A program made the translations under genes and the position numbers. From Utricularia gibba (lineage: Eukaryota; Plantae; Magnoliophyta), in the NCBI GenBank assembly GCA_002189035.1, contig NEEC01000170.1, positions 1 through 19,823 of the forward strand: 19,823 nucleotides of DNA. Reading direction: 5' to 3'. Positions 3,899-19,823 of the stretch are shown here, piece by piece. The notes below the pieces were generated by a model, which had not been told where the DNA came from, ran no database searches, and saw only the letters and a list, made by a program, of their open reading frames with translations. Position 1 is the stretch's first letter; every line of letters starts with the position of its first letter.

Positions 3899-4905
3899 AT
3901 GATTCACCGATCAGTCTCTCCCCGACGTCTGTCTGTCTCCCTGCTTCTCATTTTGTGGGGCTTTTTCCCGGCAGCTTTCGCCTCCGATTTCCACCAAAAT
4001 TTCGAAATCACGTGGGGCGACGGCCGTGCGCAGATTCTCGACAGCGGAGACCTTCTAACGCTGTCGTTGGACCGAGCATCGGGATCAGGATTCCAGTCCA
4101 AGAACGAGTACTTGTATGGGAAGATTGACATGCAGATAAAACTTATACCCGGTAATTCTGCAGGCACAGTTGCCGCCTATTATGTAAGTGGAAGTTACAT
4201 TCTTGTCTTTTCAGATCCAAATTTTGCATCTTACTTTGCATCTTTGCATCTTTGCCGCTGCAGTTTTCGTCCTCGGGGCGAATCACGACGAGATCGACCT
4301 CGAATTCCTGGGGAATCAAAGCGGGCAGCCTTACACTCTGCATACGAATGTATTCACACAGGGCAAAGGCGAGAGGGAGCAGCAGTTTCATCTCTGGTTT
4401 GATCCTACCAGCGACTTCCACACCTACTCCATCGTATGGAATCCTCAGCTCACCATGTACGAAGATCAAAGTGTCTAAACTGTAAAAAAGTAAACTTTCT
4501 GTGATCAGATGTTAGAGCTGACAACTTATGTGAAGCAGATTCATGGTAGATGGGACTCCGATCAGGCAGTTCAAGAACTTGCAATCAAGAGGAGGGCAGT
4601 TTCCGTCGAACCAGCCAATGCGAATCTACTCGAGCCTGTGGAACGCCGACGACTGGGCGACGAGAGGCGGTCTCGTTAAGACAGATTGGAGCCAGGCGCC
4701 GTTCACAGCCTCCTTCAGGAACTTCAACGCCTTGTCATGCAGCAATTCCAATTCCTGCACACAGAACTCCTGGTTCTCACAATCCTTGGACAACTGGGGA
4801 CAGCAGAGGCTGAAATGGGTGCAGAGTAATTATATGATTTACAACTACTGCACTGATCCCAAACGCTCCCCACAGAACTCCCCTGCTGAATGCTACGATG
4901 CTTGA
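3899..4905 (+). CDS. XTH: Xyloglucan endotransglucosylase/hydrolase (GH16; group I/II, TCH4/XTH22-25-like), 3 exons (3899-4183, 4264-4456, 4539-4905), about 281 aa once a -1 frameshift at 4275-4278 is corrected
   Basis: Signal peptide ([17 protein letters not shown]), [43 protein letters not shown], catalytic [58 protein letters not shown]-terminal YNYCTDPKR...PAEC. Canonical GT-AG introns at 4184-4263 and 4457-4538. Confidence 0.95.
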
Positions 4906-5851: not shown

Positions 5852-6291
5852 TCAAACCCTAGTTTTTTGCAGGAGGCTCGGATTGAAGCCAAGAGAAGAA
5901 TGCTCTCGACACAGCAAGTTTTTCAATTTCCTCAGTCCCGCCACGTCCTCTATCGTCTTCGTGAACTCCTCCAGCTCCAGCTTACTGAACCTCTCCTCAT
6001 CAGCCTCCAGGAGCCGCATGATCGCCTCGAAAACATCCGGTTCGCACGGCAACACCAGCCCGCCGGCGCCGAGAACCCGTACTCCTCCTCCGCCATCTCC
6101 AGCAACTCCGCGAACACAGGGTAGTTGAGAAACCTCGTCGGAATCACGAAGCGGATGCGGTCCGGGCCGATGTAGATCGCCATCGAGCCCGACCGGACTC
6201 GGCAGCTCCCCTCCTCGGTGCGGCCAGCCAGGCTCCGGGTCTTCCACCGCTGAACCACCTGACGGAGGCGCACGATCTTGCTGATCATCAT
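5852..6291 (-). CDS. SAUR: Small auxin-up RNA (SAUR) family protein, intronless, about 146 aa once a -1 frameshift at about 6059-6064 is corrected
   Basis: MMISKIVRLRQVVQRWK...GSMAIYIGPDRIRFVIPTRFLNYPVFAELLEMAEEEYGF in one frame and GGLVLPCEPDVFEAIMRLLE...TRV-stop in the next. Together these form the SAUR core. 440 nt + 1 = 147 codons. Confidence 0.93.
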
Positions 6292-6356
6292 TCTCGCGCT
6301 GGGGGACCGCCGGAGAGTGGAGGAAGAGATGAACTGGCTTGATCAGGTGAAGAGAG

Positions 6357-6394
6357 TGTCGGGTGTATTTATAACGGGATCGCCGCCGTGTCTC
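6357..6394 (-). promoter_or_regulatory. SAUR core promoter: TATA box flanked by auxin-response elements
   Basis: Minus-strand TATAAATA at 6373->6366, about 75 nt upstream of the ATG. TGTCTC at 6389-6394 and TGTCGG at 6357-6362 (plus strand) are both established ARF-binding hexamers. Confidence 0.6.
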
Positions 6395-7635
6395 TGACTA
6401 CAATTTTTTTCAATGGCCCGCGTGTCTTTGACTATTGGCTTAAAAAAAGAAAGAAACACCTAGGGGTAAATAAGTAAATGACTTGTCCTCCTTGACTTCA
6501 GATTACCGTAAGAATCTCAAATTCAGATTTAGTCAGTAAAAATGTTTCCTTTTTATGTACAATTTATAATAAATTAAACTTATTTATATATACAATCTAA
6601 TTATATCCCGTGTTGAATCTAATTAAATTTCAATTTGTGGCCATATTTTCTTGAAACCCAAAGACTTTGATTTTGTCATCAAGTGACAAAAAGGCTTAAA
6701 AGCAACATTTATTGGTCTTTGGTGCGCATGGTTTATGGTTGATGTGAATATTTGATTATTTTCGAGTCTCCAACTTTGATCAGTGAAAATAATTAATAAT
6801 TTATTATAAGTTAAAAAAAATGTATCTCATTATTAAATAAGAATACCTCCCACTATCTAAACCATTCCTTATATCATGAAGATCAACGCAATAAGATCAA
6901 AATTTTATGATGTTATACCATACTAATCCATGCAATCAAAGTATGGTCATACTTTAATCACTCTAATTTCTTCAAAATAGCAATGCTAGAGGCATGATCA
7001 ATGTCAATTAAATTGAACCAATCGTCGATAAAAGGAACGATGCGATTGATGGACTCAACCCCAAGGTCGTTCCTATATGATTTTAACGACTTTCTCGACT
7101 TGTCGCACCAACTCTAACTCTAATATCTAATGGTTGTTGTTATATACAAATTTCATATGATATATGTGTTACTTTCACGTACTTAATATTACAATATGAA
7201 AGCTCGTATCAAATTTTCTATCTTAGCGAAATGATCTACTTCACCACAATTGTAATGATTCCATATGCATTCTTTCATAATATGTATAGATTTTTAATTG
7301 TGATAATTTAAATGTATACTATTAAAATTAGAATTATCACAATTTCTAGCATCATATTGACATAATTTGCATTGTACTCATAAATTGATAATAAATATAA
7401 TTTAACTATTCAATTTTAAATCCATTAAAATTCTGGGTTTTTTTTTTACTTTTTTATTTAATTTGACCAGCAAATACAATATTCAGATAAATGCATTAAT
7501 TATCCTAACCGCGGTTGGGTGAGTGGATAGTCCAAAAGGCACACTTCTCCTTTGCCTGATGAAATTATAATTGGTTTTGGAAGTTTCCGCTTACCAAAAT
7601 CAATTTACTGTTGACCGCGTTTAAGACACCAAATT

Positions 7636-7779
7636 ACGTGTCAAATTTCGCTGTAATGAAATGGATTAATGGCGCCACGTAGTCGTATTTTACTAGCCGT
7701 TAGAACGCGTCCAATCAGGGAAAACCACTGCGCCATTTGAATTGCGCTGTAGACCGTAGGATCCTCCCGTGTCCAATCA
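7636..7779. promoter_or_regulatory. Dense cis-element cluster (ABRE/G-box-like, MSA, CCAAT repeats), putative distal enhancer between the divergent SAUR and GALAK genes
   Basis: ACGTGTC 7636-7642; GCCACGT 7674-7680; AGCCGTTAGA 7695-7704 (reverse complement TCTAACGGCT, an MSA consensus); GTCCAATCA twice (7709-7717, 7771-7779); ATTTGAAT 7735-7742. The cluster is a GC-richer island in an AT-rich spacer. Motif match only. Confidence 0.4.
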
Positions 7780-8116
7780 CAACCGGACACCATCCAACAT
7801 CTCGCCCACAACGTAAATAATGGTGATTAGTTTAGCTTGTTCTAAACTGATTCCCCTAATTTGGTATCCATTCCGACATTCAATTCTAATCCCGACCCAA
7901 AATCTCAAATGATAAGTTTAAGGGTCGATTCGAAATAACGTAATCCGAAATCGTTTCCTGATTTGGTTCGATTCCATGTATTATAATGAATTTTAGGTGG
8001 AACTTGATTGTTAGTATGATTATTGTATGTTTTGATTATGATTTAATTGAAATTTAAAATATATTAACAATTATTTAATTTAAAAATTGAGAATTTAGAA
8101 AATCACAGAATTTAAT

Positions 8117-8623
8117 GGTAATTGAAAGTTGGGTCAAATTCTATATTAAGTAGAAGCCCAATAGCCTGTTTAGGTTAATACTGCCCGATAGCCTATTTTG
8201 TGGTTGGGGTTCTTGATAAGGCGCTGCTACGTCGCTTTTTCTTCCAATTCGCTGATTTTATTTGCATTTGCCTCTGATTTCGCGTTGCTTTGAAGGTGGG
8301 TGTTGAGAAATTTTATTGTGTTTCATGTTTCTTGCACCTGCCAAATCACATTGTACATCTTCGTGGTCACTGGTAGTAAGCCACACTGTTTCATAGAATG
8401 AGATCAAAGAAAAGGAAATAGAATGCAAAGTCACTTCAGTGAATGGGCTACATTTTTGCATCCAACTGTAATGTTTTTAATGGCTTATTTTTTCTCCAAA
8501 ATTTTTAGTCACTGGATTAAACATTCTTCGTTGATCTTGATCCAAGTTGTCTGAGGTCTTTATCGGCTTAGATGTATATGCATGTGAATTTTTGTTATGC
8601 TTGATATCAGAATGAAAGAGGAA
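8117..8623 (+). repeat. Rearranged partial duplicate of the SART1 5' region (promoter, 5'UTR exon, intron 2, first 13 nt of the next exon)
   Basis: Exact blocks: 8119-8144 = 12243-12268 (26 nt); 8153-8166 = 12292-12305; 8201-8213 = 12354-12366; 8274-8302 = 12419-12447 (29 nt); 8321-8339 = 13910-13928; 8404-8441 = 13992-14029 (38 nt); 8608-8623 = 14277-14292. The blocks are collinear, same strand, with about 1.45 kb of the original missing between the fourth and fifth. Confidence 0.92.
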
Positions 8624-8773
8624 GTATCACTTTTGAACTCAACAACCGCTTTGAAAGGGTCCAATGACAATGACACCTGAGCCACAAGTTTGGTGTTGAT
8701 TCATGTTCACTTTTTTTGTTGACTACATTTGATGAAGACACACACAAAACCCCACCTGATTACCAATAGAATC

Positions 8774-8783
8774 TATATAAATA
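8774..8783 (+). promoter_or_regulatory. Candidate proximal TATA box of GALAK
   Basis: TATATAAATA about 40 nt upstream of the GALAK ATG (8822), implying a very short 5'UTR if used. Confidence 0.5.
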
Positions 8784-8821
8784 TGCGATTCATTGGCTAG
8801 GCTTTTGTTTCAACCGGCTCA

Positions 8822-11800
8822 ATGGCTTGGCCGACTCAGTTAGAGGTATAGATTGGTTCATATTACGCTGCTATTTGTTTTATGTTCTGATTTCCTTAAA
8901 ATGAGGTTGGATCGGCCGCTTTCACTTTGGAAAAATCATGTTTTTGCAGTTACAAGTGATCAAAACAAAGGTGTCTGAAATGTCTGGTAGAGATTGTAGT
9001 GAGGTTCGTGTTGCTGCTGCCCCCTATAGGATTTGTCCTCTCGGTGCTCACATTGACCATCAGGTTTGTATTCTTTGCATGGTGCTTAGTAGATGTTTAT
9101 GCATTGATGTGGAGAAGTGATCAATCAAGTAAACGGGTAGAGTGTATTATTTGTTAAGGTGCAATTTGAATCTTGATTAGTTTTTATGATAAGGAAAAGA
9201 ACATTGCATTTTTTGCTAGATTTGTGAGGTATTCTGAGTTGTAAGACATTCCATAGGGTGGAATTGTTTCAGCCATGACAATCAACAAGGGAGTACTTCT
9301 TGGTTTTGTTCCTTCTAAGGATTCCGAGGTACTATTTTACTGATCAGTAACTCGAATTTGCTTGCCTCTTGTTAAACCTTTGTGCATGTTCAGTAATTGT
9401 ATACAGGACAAACCTTATATGTTAGTTGATGTAGAAATGACTTAAAGTTTCCTTTTTCTATCTTCGCAGGTCATTATACAATCAGGACAGTTCAAGGGAG
9501 AAGTTAAATTTAGGTGATGGTTACATTCCTTTTGTTGCTGTTATCATAATTTGTGGTCTATAGCATGTTTGTTTGCATAACAGAGTAGATGAGGATCAAA
9601 CACTTGAGAAGGATGTCGAACTAAATAATGGTTGGGGTAATTACGCTCGGGGAGCAGTTTATGCATTAAAAAGCAGAGGCAACCCTTTAAAAAAGGTCTG
9701 CTGATGCATATGCAATGTATATGTTATATAATAGCATTTTTTAGCAATTTTTGAGACAATGATCGTTAATGGTTTTGAAAATTTAGATGTGAACAGATGA
9801 TGCATGTTTGATAAAATAGAAGAAAAAACTCTTTATTAGTTTTGGGAAGTGTTAGTGCTTTTTTGTGGATTTAAAAGGTAAACTTACACGCATTTTTTAA
9901 ATTAATAAAATGATAAGAAATTAGTAAAGAATTGGGGTCTTTCTAGAGTTTGGAAAATATACTAAAAAGCATATGAGAAAACCATGTAGTAATCACACTT
10001 AGTGTAATATTTTACTGTTGGCAGGGGATAATTGGATATATATGTGGTGTGGAGGGGCTTGATAGTTCGGGTCTCAGTTCCTCAGCTGCTGTAAGTATCT
10101 TTCTCTTTTTTTTTTTTCATATTGGTTTGATGTTTTTCTTTTGAATTTAGAATTGGAAACTAATTTCCCTACACAACTTTCTTGTTCATTTATAGTAATA
10201 TCATTTTTGGCTTCTCGTTTCCCTCTTTATGATAGGTGGGGGTGGCTTACCTGCTTGCTTTTGAAAGTGCAAACAAACTCATAGTATCTCCTTTAGAAAA
10301 TATCGAGTATGATAGGTAAGACTCACTTGATACATGGCATTCTAATTCGAATAAACTTGGAGCAGTTCCCCTTAGTTTTTACAGATCTTGGGCTCATCAA
10401 GTGTTTCATCTACTTTTCTTACCATTCAAATTCTCAGTGCTCTTTCTTATTTCACATGAAGGTTAATTGAAAATGAGTATCTCGGATTAAAAAACGGAAT
10501 CCTCGATCAATCTGCTATACTTCTTTCAAGCTATGGTTGCTTAACTTGCATGAACTGCAAGGTGATTCTTGAGTTTTGCTGTGAGGGGTTTACTTTTGTT
10601 ATCTTTTTTGAGAGGAAATTGCTTCATTACAGACGAAAGAGTCAGCCTTATTCGCCCTCCAGATGATGTAACAACAAAGAAGTTCAAGATCTTGCTAGCA
10701 TTTTCTGGCTTGAAGCAAGCTCTGATAAAAAATCCAGGCTATAATAGTCGAGTCGAAGAATGTCAGGAGGGAGCCAAGTCACTGCTTCGGTAAAATTCTT
10801 GAGAGTCTTATCATTTTTTTATGTCTAATTCTTTCATCCTAAAGAACGCACTCCTGGCAGGGCTTCTGGTAATCCTGGGTTGGAACCTCTCCTATCCAAT
10901 GGTAACTATATAGCCTAAGATCTTGTTAAACCTGAAGACAAAAAAAAAAAAAAAAAAACAATCCTACCAAAAGATCACATAGTTTGTCTATTTTAGCATC
11001 CGAAAAGTAATGATAAACCTTTTTTTGTCGATATTATATATTCCTGACTCATTTTTTGACTCCCGGTGTGACGCTTATCCTTCTTGAGACTCTTGATTTT
11101 GCTAAAAGGCTATTTGAAAACTATCAAAATATTATTCCTTTACTTTCTAGTCTTTTATGAATTTCACATTTCTGTCAAATGAATGCAGTTGAGCCAGAGG
11201 TTTATGAGGAGTATAAGGTGAGTCATGACAAGTTTGATTCTTGAACCATTTCTTTTCTTTTGAAATCTCACTAATATTGTATTCTTTTGCAGCGGATCTT
11301 GAGACCAAATCTGGCTAGAAGAGCAGAGCATTACTTTTCAGAAAACAAGAGAGTTCTCAAAGGACTTCAAGCATGGGGTTCTGGCAAACTTGATGAATTT
11401 GGGCAACTGATAACTGCATCCGGTTTGAGTTCCATTCACAACTACGAAAGTGGTACGTTTTTCCCAAACTATATTCACATTATAAATGTTAGTGCCAATT
11501 CACATGAGAGTGTTGGATTCTTATCTTGATCAATGTAAAACTCTTGGTAAAACCAGAAAGGCCATAGTCAGAAGGCTACCCTTTAAAATCCTGCATGCGT
11601 AACATAGTCATCTTTCCATCTGATGTGAGACAACATAAGATTCATGCCATGTGATACACAGGTTGTGAACCACTGATTCAGCTGTACGAGATTCTACTCA
11701 AAGCTCCGGGAGTTCTTGGAGCTCGTTTCAGCGGCGCCGGATTCCGGGGTTGCTGCATAGCATTAGTCGACGCCGAGCATGCCGATAACGCAGCGGCGTT

Positions 11801-11903
11801 CGTCACAGAAGAGTACGAGCGGATTCAACCCACATTGGCTGCACAGGTGAAGGGAAAAATGGTCTTGATGTGTGATCCTGGTGATTGTGCTCGTGTCATC
11901 TGA
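8822..11903 (+). CDS. GALAK: Galacturonokinase (GHMP kinase family), 13 exons: 8822-8845, 8950-9063, 9257-9328, 9470-9513, 9584-9695, 10025-10090, 10236-10315, 10462-10561, 10633-10789, 10861-10901, 11189-11217, 11293-11452, 11662-11903; about 413 aa once a -1 frameshift at 10641 is corrected
   Basis: MAWPTQLE start, APYRICPLGAHIDHQGG, WGNYARGAVYAL, GLDSSGLSSSAAVGVAYLLA, NGILDQSAILLS, KILLAFSGLKQAL..NPGYNSRVEECQ, ARRAEHYFSEN, GARFSGAGFRGCC, VLMCDPGDCARVI-stop. These match recalled Arabidopsis GALAK throughout. All introns are GT-AG with consistent phases; exon sum +1 = 1242 nt. Confidence 0.95.
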
Positions 11904-12278
11904 GATAAGCACCAACTTCAAACTTGTTCATCTTTGTCCAGGGGGTGATCAGCCTCTCATTCTTGAATGGTTTCTCTATTTTTCCATCATTTTTTTTTAT
12001 TTAAATCTACATTCATATTGAAACACAAATATATTTATTGGATGGCTTACTTAATTCTATTATGATAAAGTATAATATAAATCTTATTATTTCAAAAAAA
12101 AATCCCTATAATTTTCTATTATGCACATTTTAATAATATTTTATATAAATATAATAATTATTTATTTTGTGTAAATTAATCTCAATGTTATTTAATATTG
12201 AACAAATTAAGATCAAGCACTTGAAGAGTTGGTAATTGTATTTAATTGAAAGTTGGGTCAAATTCTATTTTAAAATGA

Positions 12279-12307
12279 GGCCCAATAAGTGGAAGCCCAA
12301 TAGCCCA
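12279..12307 (+). promoter_or_regulatory. Site II (GGCCCA/AGCCCA, TCP-type) cluster in the SART1 promoter
   Basis: GGCCCA 12279-12284, AGCCCA 12294-12299 and 12302-12307, upstream of a pyrimidine-rich 5'UTR-like stretch. This arrangement is typical of housekeeping gene promoters. Confidence 0.55.
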
Positions 12308-12440
12308 TGTCTGTCTCAGGTGGCCGCCCAAGGAATCGATTTCTTTTAAAGATTGGTTGGGGTTCTCTGTTATGACGCTGCTGAGCTTCGTTCTCTTCCA
12401 ATTCGCTGCTTCTCTTGGCTGATTTCGCGTTGCTTTGAAG

Positions 12441-12872
12441 GTGGGTGCTGAGAAAGATTTTGTATTTCTAGCGTTTTTATCTATTTCGAACTATTTGTTG
12501 TGAAATTCATTTACGCTTGAACCCTATGTCAAAAGGTTGTTGTCTGGTGATGTGTTGCGGGATTGGTAAACGATGCTAAAATGTTCTTCTTTCTGGGTTT
12601 ATCACGTTCATTTGAGAATGAGGATTAACTACTGCCAGCTTCGAGTCTATGAAGTTCAAAGGTTTTCTTTTAACTTGATTATCTGGTGGCTTCAAACATT
12701 TTTCATGTTGCACTCGGCGGGATCTCTTCGTCGATCCCCATATATTTTTCTGCAGTATTCCCTGTTCTCTACTTCTTTATATTGCTTCCGATAGATGGTA
12801 TATATGGTTAAGATACTGGGAACGGGTAGATTCTGAAGGCATTTATTCTTATTTCATTTTTATTGTATGCAG
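12441..12872 (+). other. Predicted 5'UTR intron of SART1
   Basis: Donor GAAG|GTGGGT at 12441 and T-rich acceptor TTGTATGCAG| at 12872, 74 nt upstream of the ATG at 12947. Inferred from splice signals, not from transcript data. Confidence 0.6.
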
Positions 12873-12946
12873 GTGCTGCTGTGAGCCTGCTTTATTCAGT
12901 CCCGTTTTTTGATACTAGACTCTGCGGGGAGTTTTTGCGTTTCAAC

Positions 12947-15900
12947 ATGGGAGAGGACTATGCTGGCTCTGGGTATGGTAGAAGTTCTGAGATAGATTCA
13001 AAAGATGGCATGCCTTCTGGTGAAAGGCGGGGAAGGCACCTTGATGATTCTGAAGAAATTGAGCATGGTGAATTGCAGGAATCAGGTAGGCATCATAAGT
13101 CCAACAAAAGTGGGCAAAAGGAGGAGAAAGAGTACAGGAGTAGGGATCAGGAACGGTCAAAATCTTCAGGTGCTCCTAGGGAGAAGAAGGACCCTGATAA
13201 AGACGGAAATTCTAGTAGGGATCAACGTAAGGATGACAGAGATGAACGAGAAAAGGATAAACATAGAACTAAAGACCGTGGAAAAGATTCTGGTCGAGAG
13301 AAACACAGGGAACCCAGTAGGGATAAAGATCGCAAGGATCGCGAGAATGAGAGGGATAGTGAACATAGGAGGGATAAAAAATATGGAAAGGATGGTGATC
13401 TGAAAAGGGATAAAGATAAGGAAAGGGAGAAGATCAGAGGAAAGGAAAAAGATAGGGAGAAGGAGAGGGATAGAAAGAAAGACAGGGAGCCAGAAATCCA
13501 CAAAGAGAAGGACAGGGCAAGGGAATATGGTAGAGATAGGGGTAGAGATTCTGCAGAAAGAGAGAAATTTAGAGATAGGAATAAGGAGAATGAAATGCAT
13601 GTAGATCAACCAGTAAACCGGGAGAATGACAGGCATGGAAGCACTCACACCCAAAGGGATGGAAGTAATGGAAGGAACGAGGATATTGATAAATATGGTT
13701 TGTCTAAACTGGAAGATGATTTTTCTCGAGATAAGCAGCCACTTGTAGAGCCAAGTGATAACTCTTCTTTTGAACCTGAGACAAGGATTGTGAGTAAAGA
13801 AGAGAAATCCGACACTAACACTCGAACATCAACATCTGAGATAGAGGAGCGCATTCAAAGGTTAGATAAATGCCTCAATTTTTAATCCCATTTTTGTCAT
13901 CCCGTTTCCTTTCATGTTTCTTGCACCTTCCAAATCACATGGTACATCTTCATGGTCACTGGTATAAGTCTGATTGAGTCATCAAATGAGGTCAAAGAAA
14001 AGGAAATAGAATGCAAAGTCACTTCAGTGCGTAGGTTACATTCTTGCATTCAACTGTAATGTTTACAATGGCTTTATTTTTCTCTGAGTTTTTTAGTACG
14101 TGTGAGAATGATTTCTACCCCCTTTTTATCACTGGATTAAACAGTCTTGATTGATCCTCATCCATGTGGTTTGAGGTCTTTATCTTAGCTTCTGCATACT
14201 GGGAAACATTTCCTGTGTGCTGAAAGGGATATCACCTTCGATGTATATGCATGTGAATTTTTGTTATACTTGATACCAGAATGAAAGAGGAAAGATTGGC
14301 GAAGTCATCAGAAGGTGCTTCTGAGGTTCTATCCTGGGTAAGTAAAAGCCGGAAACTTGAGGACAAAATGAAAGCTGAGAAGGAAAAGGCCTTGAGACTT
14401 TCGAAAACTTTTGAAGAACAGGTGATTCTTTTAAATTTTTCCACCTAAAAAATTCGGGCTCTTGTGTGTGTGTGTTTGCTGATGAGGAAGGATTCTTTTT
14501 TCTCCTTACAGGACAACATCAATGATGAGGAAAGTGACGAGGAGGCACCACAAACAGGTATGCCACTTTCTTTTATATTTTCTTTGAGCATTTACATTGT
14601 TTAATGAACCATTTTCTGTATTCATGTGAAGATGGAAAATTAATTTTTTGTGATTCTGATCCATTAAGAAGGCCTCTAACATGCATTTATTTCATGATCT
14701 GTTGAACCTGATACATGCAAGTCCATTAGGACTCCTATGGGAAGTTATTGTTATTTGTTGTAGCCTATGGATGTGATTTGCACAGTTCCATTTATCAAGC
14801 TTGTTTTTTATGGATCATAAATAAGATCTTGGCGGGGTCAGAGTTCTGCAGCATGGTTTAGAGAGAGTAGCCGAAGGTGGGGCGATTGTCCTTACGCTCA
14901 AAGATCAGAGCATACTGGCTGATGGAGATATCAATCAAGGTACCTATTTAGTGGTATTTTTTTTCTCCATTTCCAGCTTTTCTTCTGATTTTTCATCCAT
15001 TTGGTATTTTATGGAATCAGATATCCTAAGGTGACGTTAAAATTGTATATACCAGAGACAGATGTGCTGGAAAATGTGGAAATTGGAGAGCAGAAGCGAA
15101 GGGAGGAAGCTTACAAGGCTGCAAAAAAGAAAACAAGTCTTTATGATGACAAGTACAATTTTCCTGCCATAGGTGTTGATTATCTTCTGTGGGTAAAATG
15201 CGATCAAATTTGTTTCCTATCACCTATTTACAGGTTCAATGATGAAGCTGCTAACGAGAAGAGAATATTACCGCAGTATGATGACCCAGTTGTTGATGAG
15301 GTTTATGTTACACAAATCTTGGATGTCTTCTTCCGTGAACTCACCTTCATTATATCCCTATTCATTGCTTCTTTCCTCCTGACAGTGGATGACCCTCGAT
15401 TCAAGTGGTCGTTTCACTGCTGAAGCTGACAGGAAACTGGAAGAGGTAACTTGATTTCTCTTGTGTTTTTGAATTATCTCACATGGTGTCTAAAATTCGT
15501 TTTTTAGTAATGCCACAGCATTTTTATGATTTTTGAGAATATGTTAACAGCTTAGGAAAAGACTCCATGGAGCGTCCACTAGATTCAAGGGTGAAGACCT
15601 CAACTTTTCTACCAAGGTGTCATCAGATTATTATACTGAAGAAGAAATGGTTGCAAAGTTCAAAAAGCCAAAAAAAAAGAAAGCTATGAGGAAGAAGGAG
15701 AAGTTGGACCTTGATGCACTTGAAGCAGAGGCAATAATTTCTGGATTAGGCTCTAATGATCTTGGTTCACGGGACGATGGAAGAAGGCAAAACCTTAGAG
15801 AAAAAGAAGAAATGATTCACGCTGAGATGAAAAATAAAGCTTACCAGTTAGCATATGCTAAAGCAGATGAAGCATCTAAAGCACTTCGACTGATGCAAGG

Positions 15901-17422: not shown

Positions 17423-17667
17423 ATGAGCACTTCTAATGCCCTACTGTGAAATTTGGAGGCATGGGGACATACACTAATTCCAAATTTGCAGTACCACATT
17501 GTGTCCTACAATTTGATACGGCTGTTTTGAAAAAACTTGTAAGATCCTTAAAAATGAAAAACAGACCACCCTCCAAAAAAGAGGTTCTCTTTCAATCCAG
17601 ATATTGGTTTCAATCAGGAAAACACACCCGTAAAGGAGAAGAGGACTGTTGCTGGCCACCAGAACAA

Positions 17668-17723
17668 GTTGTATGCAGAGCAGAGGCGGCGGAAGTATTT
17701 GAAGCCAGCCCTGGAGGCGAGGG
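17668..17723 (-). pseudogene. Short remnant of an O-methyltransferase 3' end (paralogous to 18833-18888)
   Basis: 50/56 nt identical to 18833-18888. Minus strand reads LASRAGFKYFRRLCSAYN versus [18 protein letters not shown] in the neighbouring OMT. Flanks lose similarity and an in-frame TAA lies a few codons upstream. Confidence 0.8.
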
Positions 17724-18802: not shown

Positions 18803-19305
18803 TCATTTGGTGAGCTCCATGACCCAGAGGAGGTTGTACGCAGAGCAGACTCGCCGGAAGTGTTTGAAGCCAGCCCTGGCGGCGAGGGTGCGGAACTCCT
18901 CTTCTGTCCTCTCCTTGCCGCCCGGGAAGAGCCCGAGCATGATGATAACGAGGTTGGCGACCTTCTGGGTGGCCAGGGAGAGGTCAGGGGCGTCGGGGAG
19001 AATGGAATCCACCACGATCACTTTCCCGGACGGGGGGATGGCTTCGTAGCAGTTCTTGAGCAGCTTTTCGCAGTGGGCGTCGCTCCAGTTGTGGAGGATC
19101 CACTGCATGTGAATCAGGAGACCTAATTTAGAATGAACCCAACTCGACGCTGTAGGGATTGAGAAGCAGTGTCTAACCTTGAGGAAGATGGCGTCTCCTT
19201 TAGGGACGCTGAAGAAAATGTCGCCGACCACGTTTGGATACGTAGATAAGATGGCGTCCCGCGGAGGACGTGCTCCAGGTCGAGGATGACGCCCTGTAGG
19301 TGAGA
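18803..19305 (-). CDS. Class II (COMT-like) SAM-dependent O-methyltransferase, C-terminal third only (exons about 19305/19293->19178 and 19102->18803); -1 frameshift at about 19233; 5' part not found in the window
   Basis: [20 protein letters not shown] (cf. PHIKGINFDLPHV), [18 protein letters not shown] | [36 protein letters not shown]...[19 protein letters not shown]...WVMELTK-stop. GT-AG intron at 19177->19103 in the conserved K|W position. Confidence 0.85.
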
Positions 19306-19823
19306 TATGTGAAGAACACCATGCATCTTTGAATCTACTACTATAATAACTCACACATGCAACTTGAAGCCACATTGGGCAACTTGCCCTGTTACTAGAA
19401 CATAATGTTACTGGATACTATGTTTTTCTGGGCATAAATCTGATCTCATGGAGTTCAAAGAAACAATACTGTATCACGATCAAGTACAAAATCAAAATAT
19501 CAAGGCATGGCACATAGAACTGTTGAGGTGACATTGTTACAATTTGCCTTGAAAGATTTGAAGGTCAAGCTGAAGCCAACTCCCACTCTACATTGCGATA
19601 ACATGAATGACTTGCATCTTACTATAAATCCAATATCGGAGTAAGCATGTTGAAATCTACCATCATTTTGTATAGAAGAGAGTAGCATTGGGTTATTTGG
19701 TGACTAGTCACATTCCAACTCACCACCAAATTGTTGATTAATTTACAAAGAGGATCTCCTCACAGCGAATGATATTTATTAGAGTCAAACTTGGCCTCAA
19801 CCCATGGCCTAGTTGGAGAGAGG

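Follow-up and report, generated by a model that had tools for sequence, protein, structure and literature searches.

Does GALAK, a metabolic gene, use a promoter that was copied from its neighbour SART1? The question is raised by the 505 bp at 8119-8623 of the window (the whole 19,823-nt stretch of DNA analysed here), which are a collinear, same-strand copy of two pieces of the 5' end of SART1 (12243-12468 and 13910-14292) and lie upstream of GALAK. The earlier note read this arrangement as the capture of a promoter by an unrelated gene.

The two genes and their upstream DNA

The window is gene-dense plant DNA. Its genes were identified with Pfam and by homology, each exon or ORF being searched separately, and the matches of GALAK and SART1 are those of individual exons. 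The following genes were found:

3899-4905, plus strand: XTH gene
5950-6291, minus strand: intronless SAUR gene
8822-11903, plus strand: GHMP-kinase gene (GALAK)
about 12350 to about 17420, plus strand: SART-1 family gene
18803-19375, minus strand: COMT-like O-methyltransferase gene

The closest relatives of the SAUR protein all belong to Lamiales and share at most 60% identity with it. In addition, a precursor of a MIR169-family microRNA is located at 2268-2358 on the minus strand (Rfam RF00645, 71.7 bits for a gathering score of 50, E 5e-19).

The parent of the copy had been labelled SART1, a U4/U6.U5 tri-snRNP protein, and it deserves this label, as 15617-16801 matches Pfam PF03343 well above the cut-off (E 2.3e-25, 89.8 bits versus 31.5). 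The Arg/Asp/Glu/Lys-rich exon 2 and exon 3 of SART1 have no Pfam match of their own and were assigned by their position, their open frame and what is known of Arabidopsis DOT2. The 5' end of the gene can be divided as follows:

12243-12440, plus strand: promoter and predicted non-coding exon 1, with site II boxes at 12279, 12294 and 12302 (12279-12307)
12354-12440, plus strand: predicted exon 1, non-coding and pyrimidine-rich, with the donor GAAG/GTGGGTG
12441-12873, plus strand: predicted intron 1 (leader intron), 433 nt
12874-13860, plus strand: first coding exon (exon 2), ATG at 12947
13861-14279, plus strand: intron 2
14280-14422, plus strand: exon 3, of which the first 13 nt (14280-14292) were copied
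12469-13909, plus strand: segment without counterpart in the copy (rest of intron 1, first coding exon, 49 nt of intron 2)

The presence of a leader intron in SART1 is supported by the site II boxes, the pyrimidine patch and a GT donor followed by an ATG-rich, intron-like stretch of 433 nt. With this predicted intron (12441-12873), SART1 transcription would start within the stretch that was copied.

GALAK, located between the copy and its parent, comprises the following parts:

8624-8821, plus strand: proximal upstream DNA, without homology to anything else in the window
8822-11903, plus strand: GALAK (galacturonokinase, GHMP kinase), with exon 1 at 8822-8845 (MAWPTQLE) and intron 1 at 8846-8949
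from 8950, plus strand: exon 2; the stop codon of the gene is at 11901-11903

The identification of GALAK as an unrelated metabolic gene, already proposed in the earlier note, is borne out by a GHMP_kinases_C match (E 5e-10) and by the last exon, which shares 61-72% identity with plant protein fragments named galacturonokinase by JGI and NCBI. The galactokinase signature, searched on a single exon, is weak and below the cut-off (E 3e-4). The start exon (MAWPT...) presumably resembles the N-terminus of the Arabidopsis galacturonokinase, and the ATG is at 8822, not 8823. The proximal DNA harbours CCAAT motifs near 8661 and 8763 and a TATA-like box, CTATATAAATA, at 8773-8783, where a TATA had indeed been placed (at 8774). 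Both this box and the N-terminal exon are intact. Judged on these elements, transcription of GALAK most likely still relies on its own promoter, a CCAAT/TATA one located at about 8773-8810. On the other hand, use of the TATA at 8773 would give GALAK a very short leader (about 10-20 nt).

Structure of the copy

The homology between 8119-8623 and SART1 (79-92% identity, BLAST E down to 3e-53) was recovered alike by repeat search, blastn and MAFFT. The aligned segments, all on the same strand, are:

8119-8163 with SART1 12243-12287: 89% identity
8201-8324 with SART1 12354-12468: 79% identity, gapped
8321-8509 with SART1 13910-14097: 86% identity, E 3e-53
8502-8564 with SART1 14123-14184: 86% identity
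8561-8623 with SART1 14230-14292: 92% identity

These segments are collinear, as had been claimed on the basis of seven exact blocks of 13-38 nt, although the blocks of this size number at least ten. Likewise, a span of 8117-8623 had been proposed: its right edge is correct, whereas the homology starts at 8119. Both edges are sharp, as shuffle tests detected no similarity past 8119 and 8623 (z <1). Within these borders, four parts can be distinguished:

8119-8200, plus strand: copy of the upstream promoter of SART1 (12243-12353; 83.5% identity, 6 gap events)
8201-8295, plus strand: copy of the non-coding exon 1, 84% identity to 12354-12440 with a 9-nt insertion (8265-8273)
8296-8610, plus strand: chimeric intron-like stretch of 315 nt, ending at the intron-2 acceptor CAG
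8611-8623, plus strand: first 13 nt of SART1 exon 3 (A ATG AAA GAG GAA), identical to 14280-14292 and followed by a GT at 8624

The retention of a site II motif, of the pyrimidine-rich leader and of the exon-1 donor, reported previously, is found again here: the copy carries a box AGCCCA at 8155-8160, the pyrimidine patch and, at the donor, 29 exact nucleotides shared with the parent (CTGATTTCGCGTTGCTTTGAAG/GTGGGTG). The box at 8155 is the only one kept of the three present in SART1. A second, degenerate box (GCCCGA, 8183) is the product of an internal repeat of 27 nt, a spaced direct repeat that occupies 8156-8198 (GCCCAATAGCCTGTTT and GCCCGATAGCCTATTT). In SART1, the site II unit is itself repeated in tandem at 12269-12299 (15-nt repeat), so that the boxes of both loci seem to be renewed and lost through small tandem duplications.

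The chimeric stretch consists of the donor of intron 1 and about 25 nt that follow it, joined to the last 370 nt or so of intron 2. The intron-2 part (8321-8610) begins at the 50th base of this intron and has been shortened by deletions of 32 and 49 nt. With an AT content of 0.65, the chimeric stretch is similar to the real introns of the window. An estimate of about 1.45 kb had been given for the DNA that is missing; the gap amounts to 1,445 nt and includes, as stated, the rest of intron 1 and the whole first coding exon, together with the first 49 nt of intron 2, which had been overlooked. As also described before, the copy stops 13 nt into the next exon (exon 3), 199 nt before the ATG of GALAK.

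The copy cannot encode the SART1 protein, as the first coding exon (12874-13860) and everything past 14292 are absent. From the ATG at 8612, the longest ORF has 22 codons and ends at a stop at 8678-8680.

A 20-nt inverted repeat (80% complementary) links the exon-1 donor region of the copy (8288-8307) to 8638-8657, just past its end. It is probably due to chance, because similar pairs are common in the AT-rich DNA found here.

Age and origin of the copy

The copy is a DNA-level duplicate, since both the promoter and intron 2 of the parent were copied. A retrocopy is ruled out: the sequence of intron 2 and the start of intron 1 are retained, and the copy was thus made from genomic DNA. In the part derived from the promoter and exon 1, the Kimura two-parameter distance (K2P) to the parent is 0.183 (27/167 substitutions) with 9 indel events; in the intron-derived part, it is 0.134-0.141 (37/289 substitutions) with 4 indel events. 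The substitution rates of the two parts do not differ significantly (Fisher p 0.33), while indels are commoner in the promoter part (p 0.018). Overall, copy and parent show 13-18% divergence and about 13 indels. With the substitution rates in common use for plants, between 7e-9 and 1.5e-8 per site and per year or generation, a K of 0.13-0.18 translates into some 4-13 million years.

That the assembly was joined wrongly here or contains a false duplication is barely conceivable, as duplications created by assembly are near-identical, whereas the two sequences differ at 13-18% of their aligned sites and by some 13 indels that include gaps of 32, 49 and 1,445 nt. The stretch at 8119-8623 is therefore a real, old and eroding partial duplicate of the SART1 5' end, and the region from -200 to -700 of GALAK is SART1-derived.

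Gene fragments that keep introns and lack exons are typical of transposons that capture pieces of genes, such as those of the Pack-MULE, Helitron, CACTA or Harbinger type, and the structure of the copy would fit such a capture. However, 8119-8623 is not flanked by terminal inverted repeats, target-site duplications or Helitron-type ends; the only repeats found were short, AT-rich and due to chance. Moreover, the donor gene lies next to the copy and has the same orientation, and no further copies of 8119-8623 are present in the window. An origin by transposon capture is thus extremely improbable. As for evidence from RNA or related species, exact-pattern scans of metagenome contigs with blocks common to both copies gave 0 matches. 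Seven ORFs of the window, two of them across junctions specific to the copy, had no exact match in the collection, but this says little, as control ORFs were absent from it as well.

The earlier proposal that a local duplication and an internal deletion placed promoter-like and leader DNA of SART1 before an unrelated gene agrees with the homology, the borders and the 1,445-nt gap. In the parent, this gap is bounded by TTTC repeats (12465-12468 and 13910-13913), of which a single TTTC remains in the copy (8321-8324). Similarly, the 49-nt gap within the intron 2 copy is bounded in the parent by a 4-nt repeat, TATC, and the 32-nt gap sits between imperfect TTTTTA repeats. The large indels all shorten the copy, which is 104 nt shorter than the aligned segments of the parent. 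The flanks of these gaps look like the signature of microhomology-mediated deletion (illegitimate recombination).

Combining these data, the following history of the copy can be drawn, the order of its steps being inferred. The 5' end of the neighbouring SART1 gene would have been duplicated locally at the DNA level, without any recognisable transposon. This could have occurred by two routes. In the first one, a tandem duplication would have covered GALAK together with at least the 5' end of SART1, and the surplus copy of GALAK would later have been lost along with most of the additional SART1 sequence. In the second one, a patchwork filler copy would have been made during the repair of a double-strand break, with a template switch at TTTC. 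Deletions flanked by microhomologies would then have eroded the copy; the largest, of 1,445 nt at TTTC, would have taken the first coding exon, and about a quarter of the original 2.05 kb would remain. A simple tandem duplication of the 5.67 kb at 8624-14292 was considered and rejected, as it needs a copy of GALAK upstream of 8119 and survives only with an extra deletion; neither blastn nor tblastx detected a remnant of GALAK in 6292-8118.

Both routes have counterparts in known systems. Partial duplications that copy the 5' end of a gene beside other sequence are well documented (PMC4069613). As in the partial tandem or local duplications of 5' ends described in Drosophila (PMC4069613; reviewed in PMC3449122), the copy has one boundary within a coding exon and one in non-coding DNA, and the copied 5' end now borders a formerly unrelated sequence, into which its ATG reads (22-codon ORF). 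Unlike the Drosophila-type cases (PMC4069613), the copy studied here is old and eroded and has lost its coding exon, and the downstream gene, GALAK, is complete and has its own promoter, so that no chimeric protein is evident. Repair of double-strand breaks with filler DNA is documented as well (PMC3445842). According to this source, which refers to Wicker et al. 2010, gene fragments can be inserted at a double-strand break by synthesis-dependent strand annealing. As in the filler DNA considered there (PMC3445842), two patches from a nearby template, 12243-12468 and 13910-14292, meet at a 4-nt microhomology, at a non-coding site and without transposon ends. In contrast with that filler DNA (PMC3445842), the structure of the copy is equally explained by a duplication followed by a deletion, and with 15% divergence no clear microhomology is seen at its insertion junctions.

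A second relic of a gene fragment is located at 17659-17723 (65 nt, about 240 nt past the SART1 stop). It is 86% identical to 18824-18888, at a distance of 1.16 kb in the 3' end of the COMT-like gene, whose orientation it shares; its minus-strand reading is ...ASRAGFKYFRRLCSAYNLFW. This relic, about as diverged as the SART1 copy, shows that such leftovers are common here.

This kind of event is already well known in plants and animals (PMC4069613, PMC3527215, PMC3449122), and the copy is most likely what an unremarkable local duplication has left behind. On current evidence, it mainly illustrates how deletions flanked by microhomologies wear down local or tandem duplicates in a plant genome that is dense in genes.

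Does the copy drive GALAK?

If the promoter capture were true, the copy would be an active alternative promoter of GALAK, the chimeric stretch (8296-8610) would be a new leader intron and GALAK would acquire a SART1-like expression linked to proliferation. There is a precedent in plants, the PEP1 locus of Arabis alpina, which likewise carries a partial local duplicate: a full and a partial tandem copy give two transcripts, the partial duplicate, with its promoter and first exon, supplying the second transcription start (PMC3527215). However, the PEP1 duplicate belongs to the same gene and its expression was shown (PMC3527215), whereas the copy of SART1 lies upstream of an unrelated gene, for which it is a putative promoter.

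Several features of the copy are consistent with such a capture. One site II box and the pyrimidine patch have been kept, the donor is perfectly conserved and the acceptor is intact. A random deletion would leave a clean intron, with both donor and acceptor intact, with a chance of only about 0.09, and the deletion that occurred is a clean exon-skipping one. The exact run at the donor (29 nt; 36/37 identical) is longer than evenly spread mismatches predict (simulation P ~0.015), although constraint on the parent alone would suffice to explain it. CpG is not depleted in the promoter part (observed/expected 0.99, 7 CpGs). There is therefore no signature of decay by methylation, which would fit open, promoter-like chromatin.

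Other features point in the opposite direction. Site II motifs (TGGGCY) are described as redundant in their action and as acting with partner elements (PMC3022908). Two of the three boxes are gone from the copy, and no telo-box that could partner the remaining one is found near it or, for that matter, near the parent. Furthermore, a promoter that is maintained should be the better-kept part of the copy, yet this part is no better kept than the intron, which suggests that the promoter has not been maintained. Selection does not appear to have kept its motifs: in addition to the loss of boxes, the promoter part has decayed at least as fast as the intron DNA, is no less diverged from the parent and shows more indels. 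GALAK, for its part, has retained its own core promoter and start exon. The argument would also require that SART1 transcription starts within the copied stretch, which is itself deduced from the predicted leader intron.

The leader that would result raises a further difficulty. A transcript that started in the copy and lost the chimeric intron, but was otherwise unspliced up to GALAK, would contain six upstream ATGs (8612, 8664, 8670, 8703, 8732 and 8783), all of which meet a stop before 8822; the first one would open the 22-codon ORF as a uORF. A productive mRNA could be obtained by leaky scanning, by reinitiation or if the 13-nt piece of exon 3 were spliced from 8624 to 8949. In the latter case, splicing from the donor GT at 8624 to the acceptor of GALAK exon 2 at 8949 places the ATG at 8612 in frame with exon 2 (MKEE, then LQVIK...), which favours the capture. 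The plant donor consensus is AG/GTAAGT, and by eye the donor at 8624 (GAA/GTATCA) looks weak in comparison. The leader would thus be poorly compatible with translation of GALAK, as its six upstream ATGs would be avoided solely via this apparently weak donor.

Taking both sets of observations together, the sequence leans against a productive captured promoter, and a true capture is rather unlikely. The copy probably has no promoter function for GALAK. At most, it might retain a residual TCP-type site II element or drive a weak upstream transcription yielding uORF-laden, poorly translated RNAs.

The copy might also be an independent, short, non-coding unit, i.e. an orphan 5' stub of a gene that acts on GALAK by transcriptional interference. 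It would be transcribed and spliced, and its transcription would then terminate or read into the GALAK promoter without supplying any mRNA. The retained promoter and splice features would fit such a unit, as would the fact that the sole ORF starting from the retained ATG has 22 codons, so that any transcript would be non-coding. Against it, the copy shows neither a known RNA family nor an unusually stable fold, and only one of the three site II boxes is left; this reading is very unlikely. A host of an intronic small RNA or snoRNA, whose expression would explain why promoter, splice sites and intron persist, was also considered and rejected, since Rfam gave no match at E up to 10 over 8000-8900 and the two copies share no stable fold. 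On three of the four strands, the folding of the best-conserved 133 nt gave z scores of 0.2-0.6; the value of -2.7 obtained for the minus strand of the parent alone is not shared by the copy.

On balance, the copy is thus probably a functionally neutral or near-neutral relic in decay. A much broader reading can be formulated, in which this compact genome repeatedly copies modules made of a promoter and a leader intron to neighbouring genes. GALAK would in that case possess, in the SART1 module, a second promoter that works, a functional new leader intron would derive from the exon-skipping deletion, and a kinase of pectin salvage would be tied to the TCP/site II proliferation programme. This is clearly unlikely. 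If modules were repeatedly copied in this way, this would be a general means of renewing regulatory DNA under strong deletion pressure. If the copy itself were active, it would show in nature how a local partial duplication can rewire regulation, with a leader intron born from two different introns.

Whatever its activity, the 700 bp upstream of GALAK are largely foreign DNA, which matters when the GALAK promoter has to be defined. Farther upstream, the AT-rich spacer between SAUR and GALAK contains a GC-richer island (7500-7810; 45% GC, CpG observed/expected 1.2), which has no ORF of more than 56 aa and no Rfam match. It carries a CG[C/T]GTCCAATCA motif twice (7706 and 7768) and one CCACGTAG element, and it might serve SAUR or GALAK as a regulatory module.
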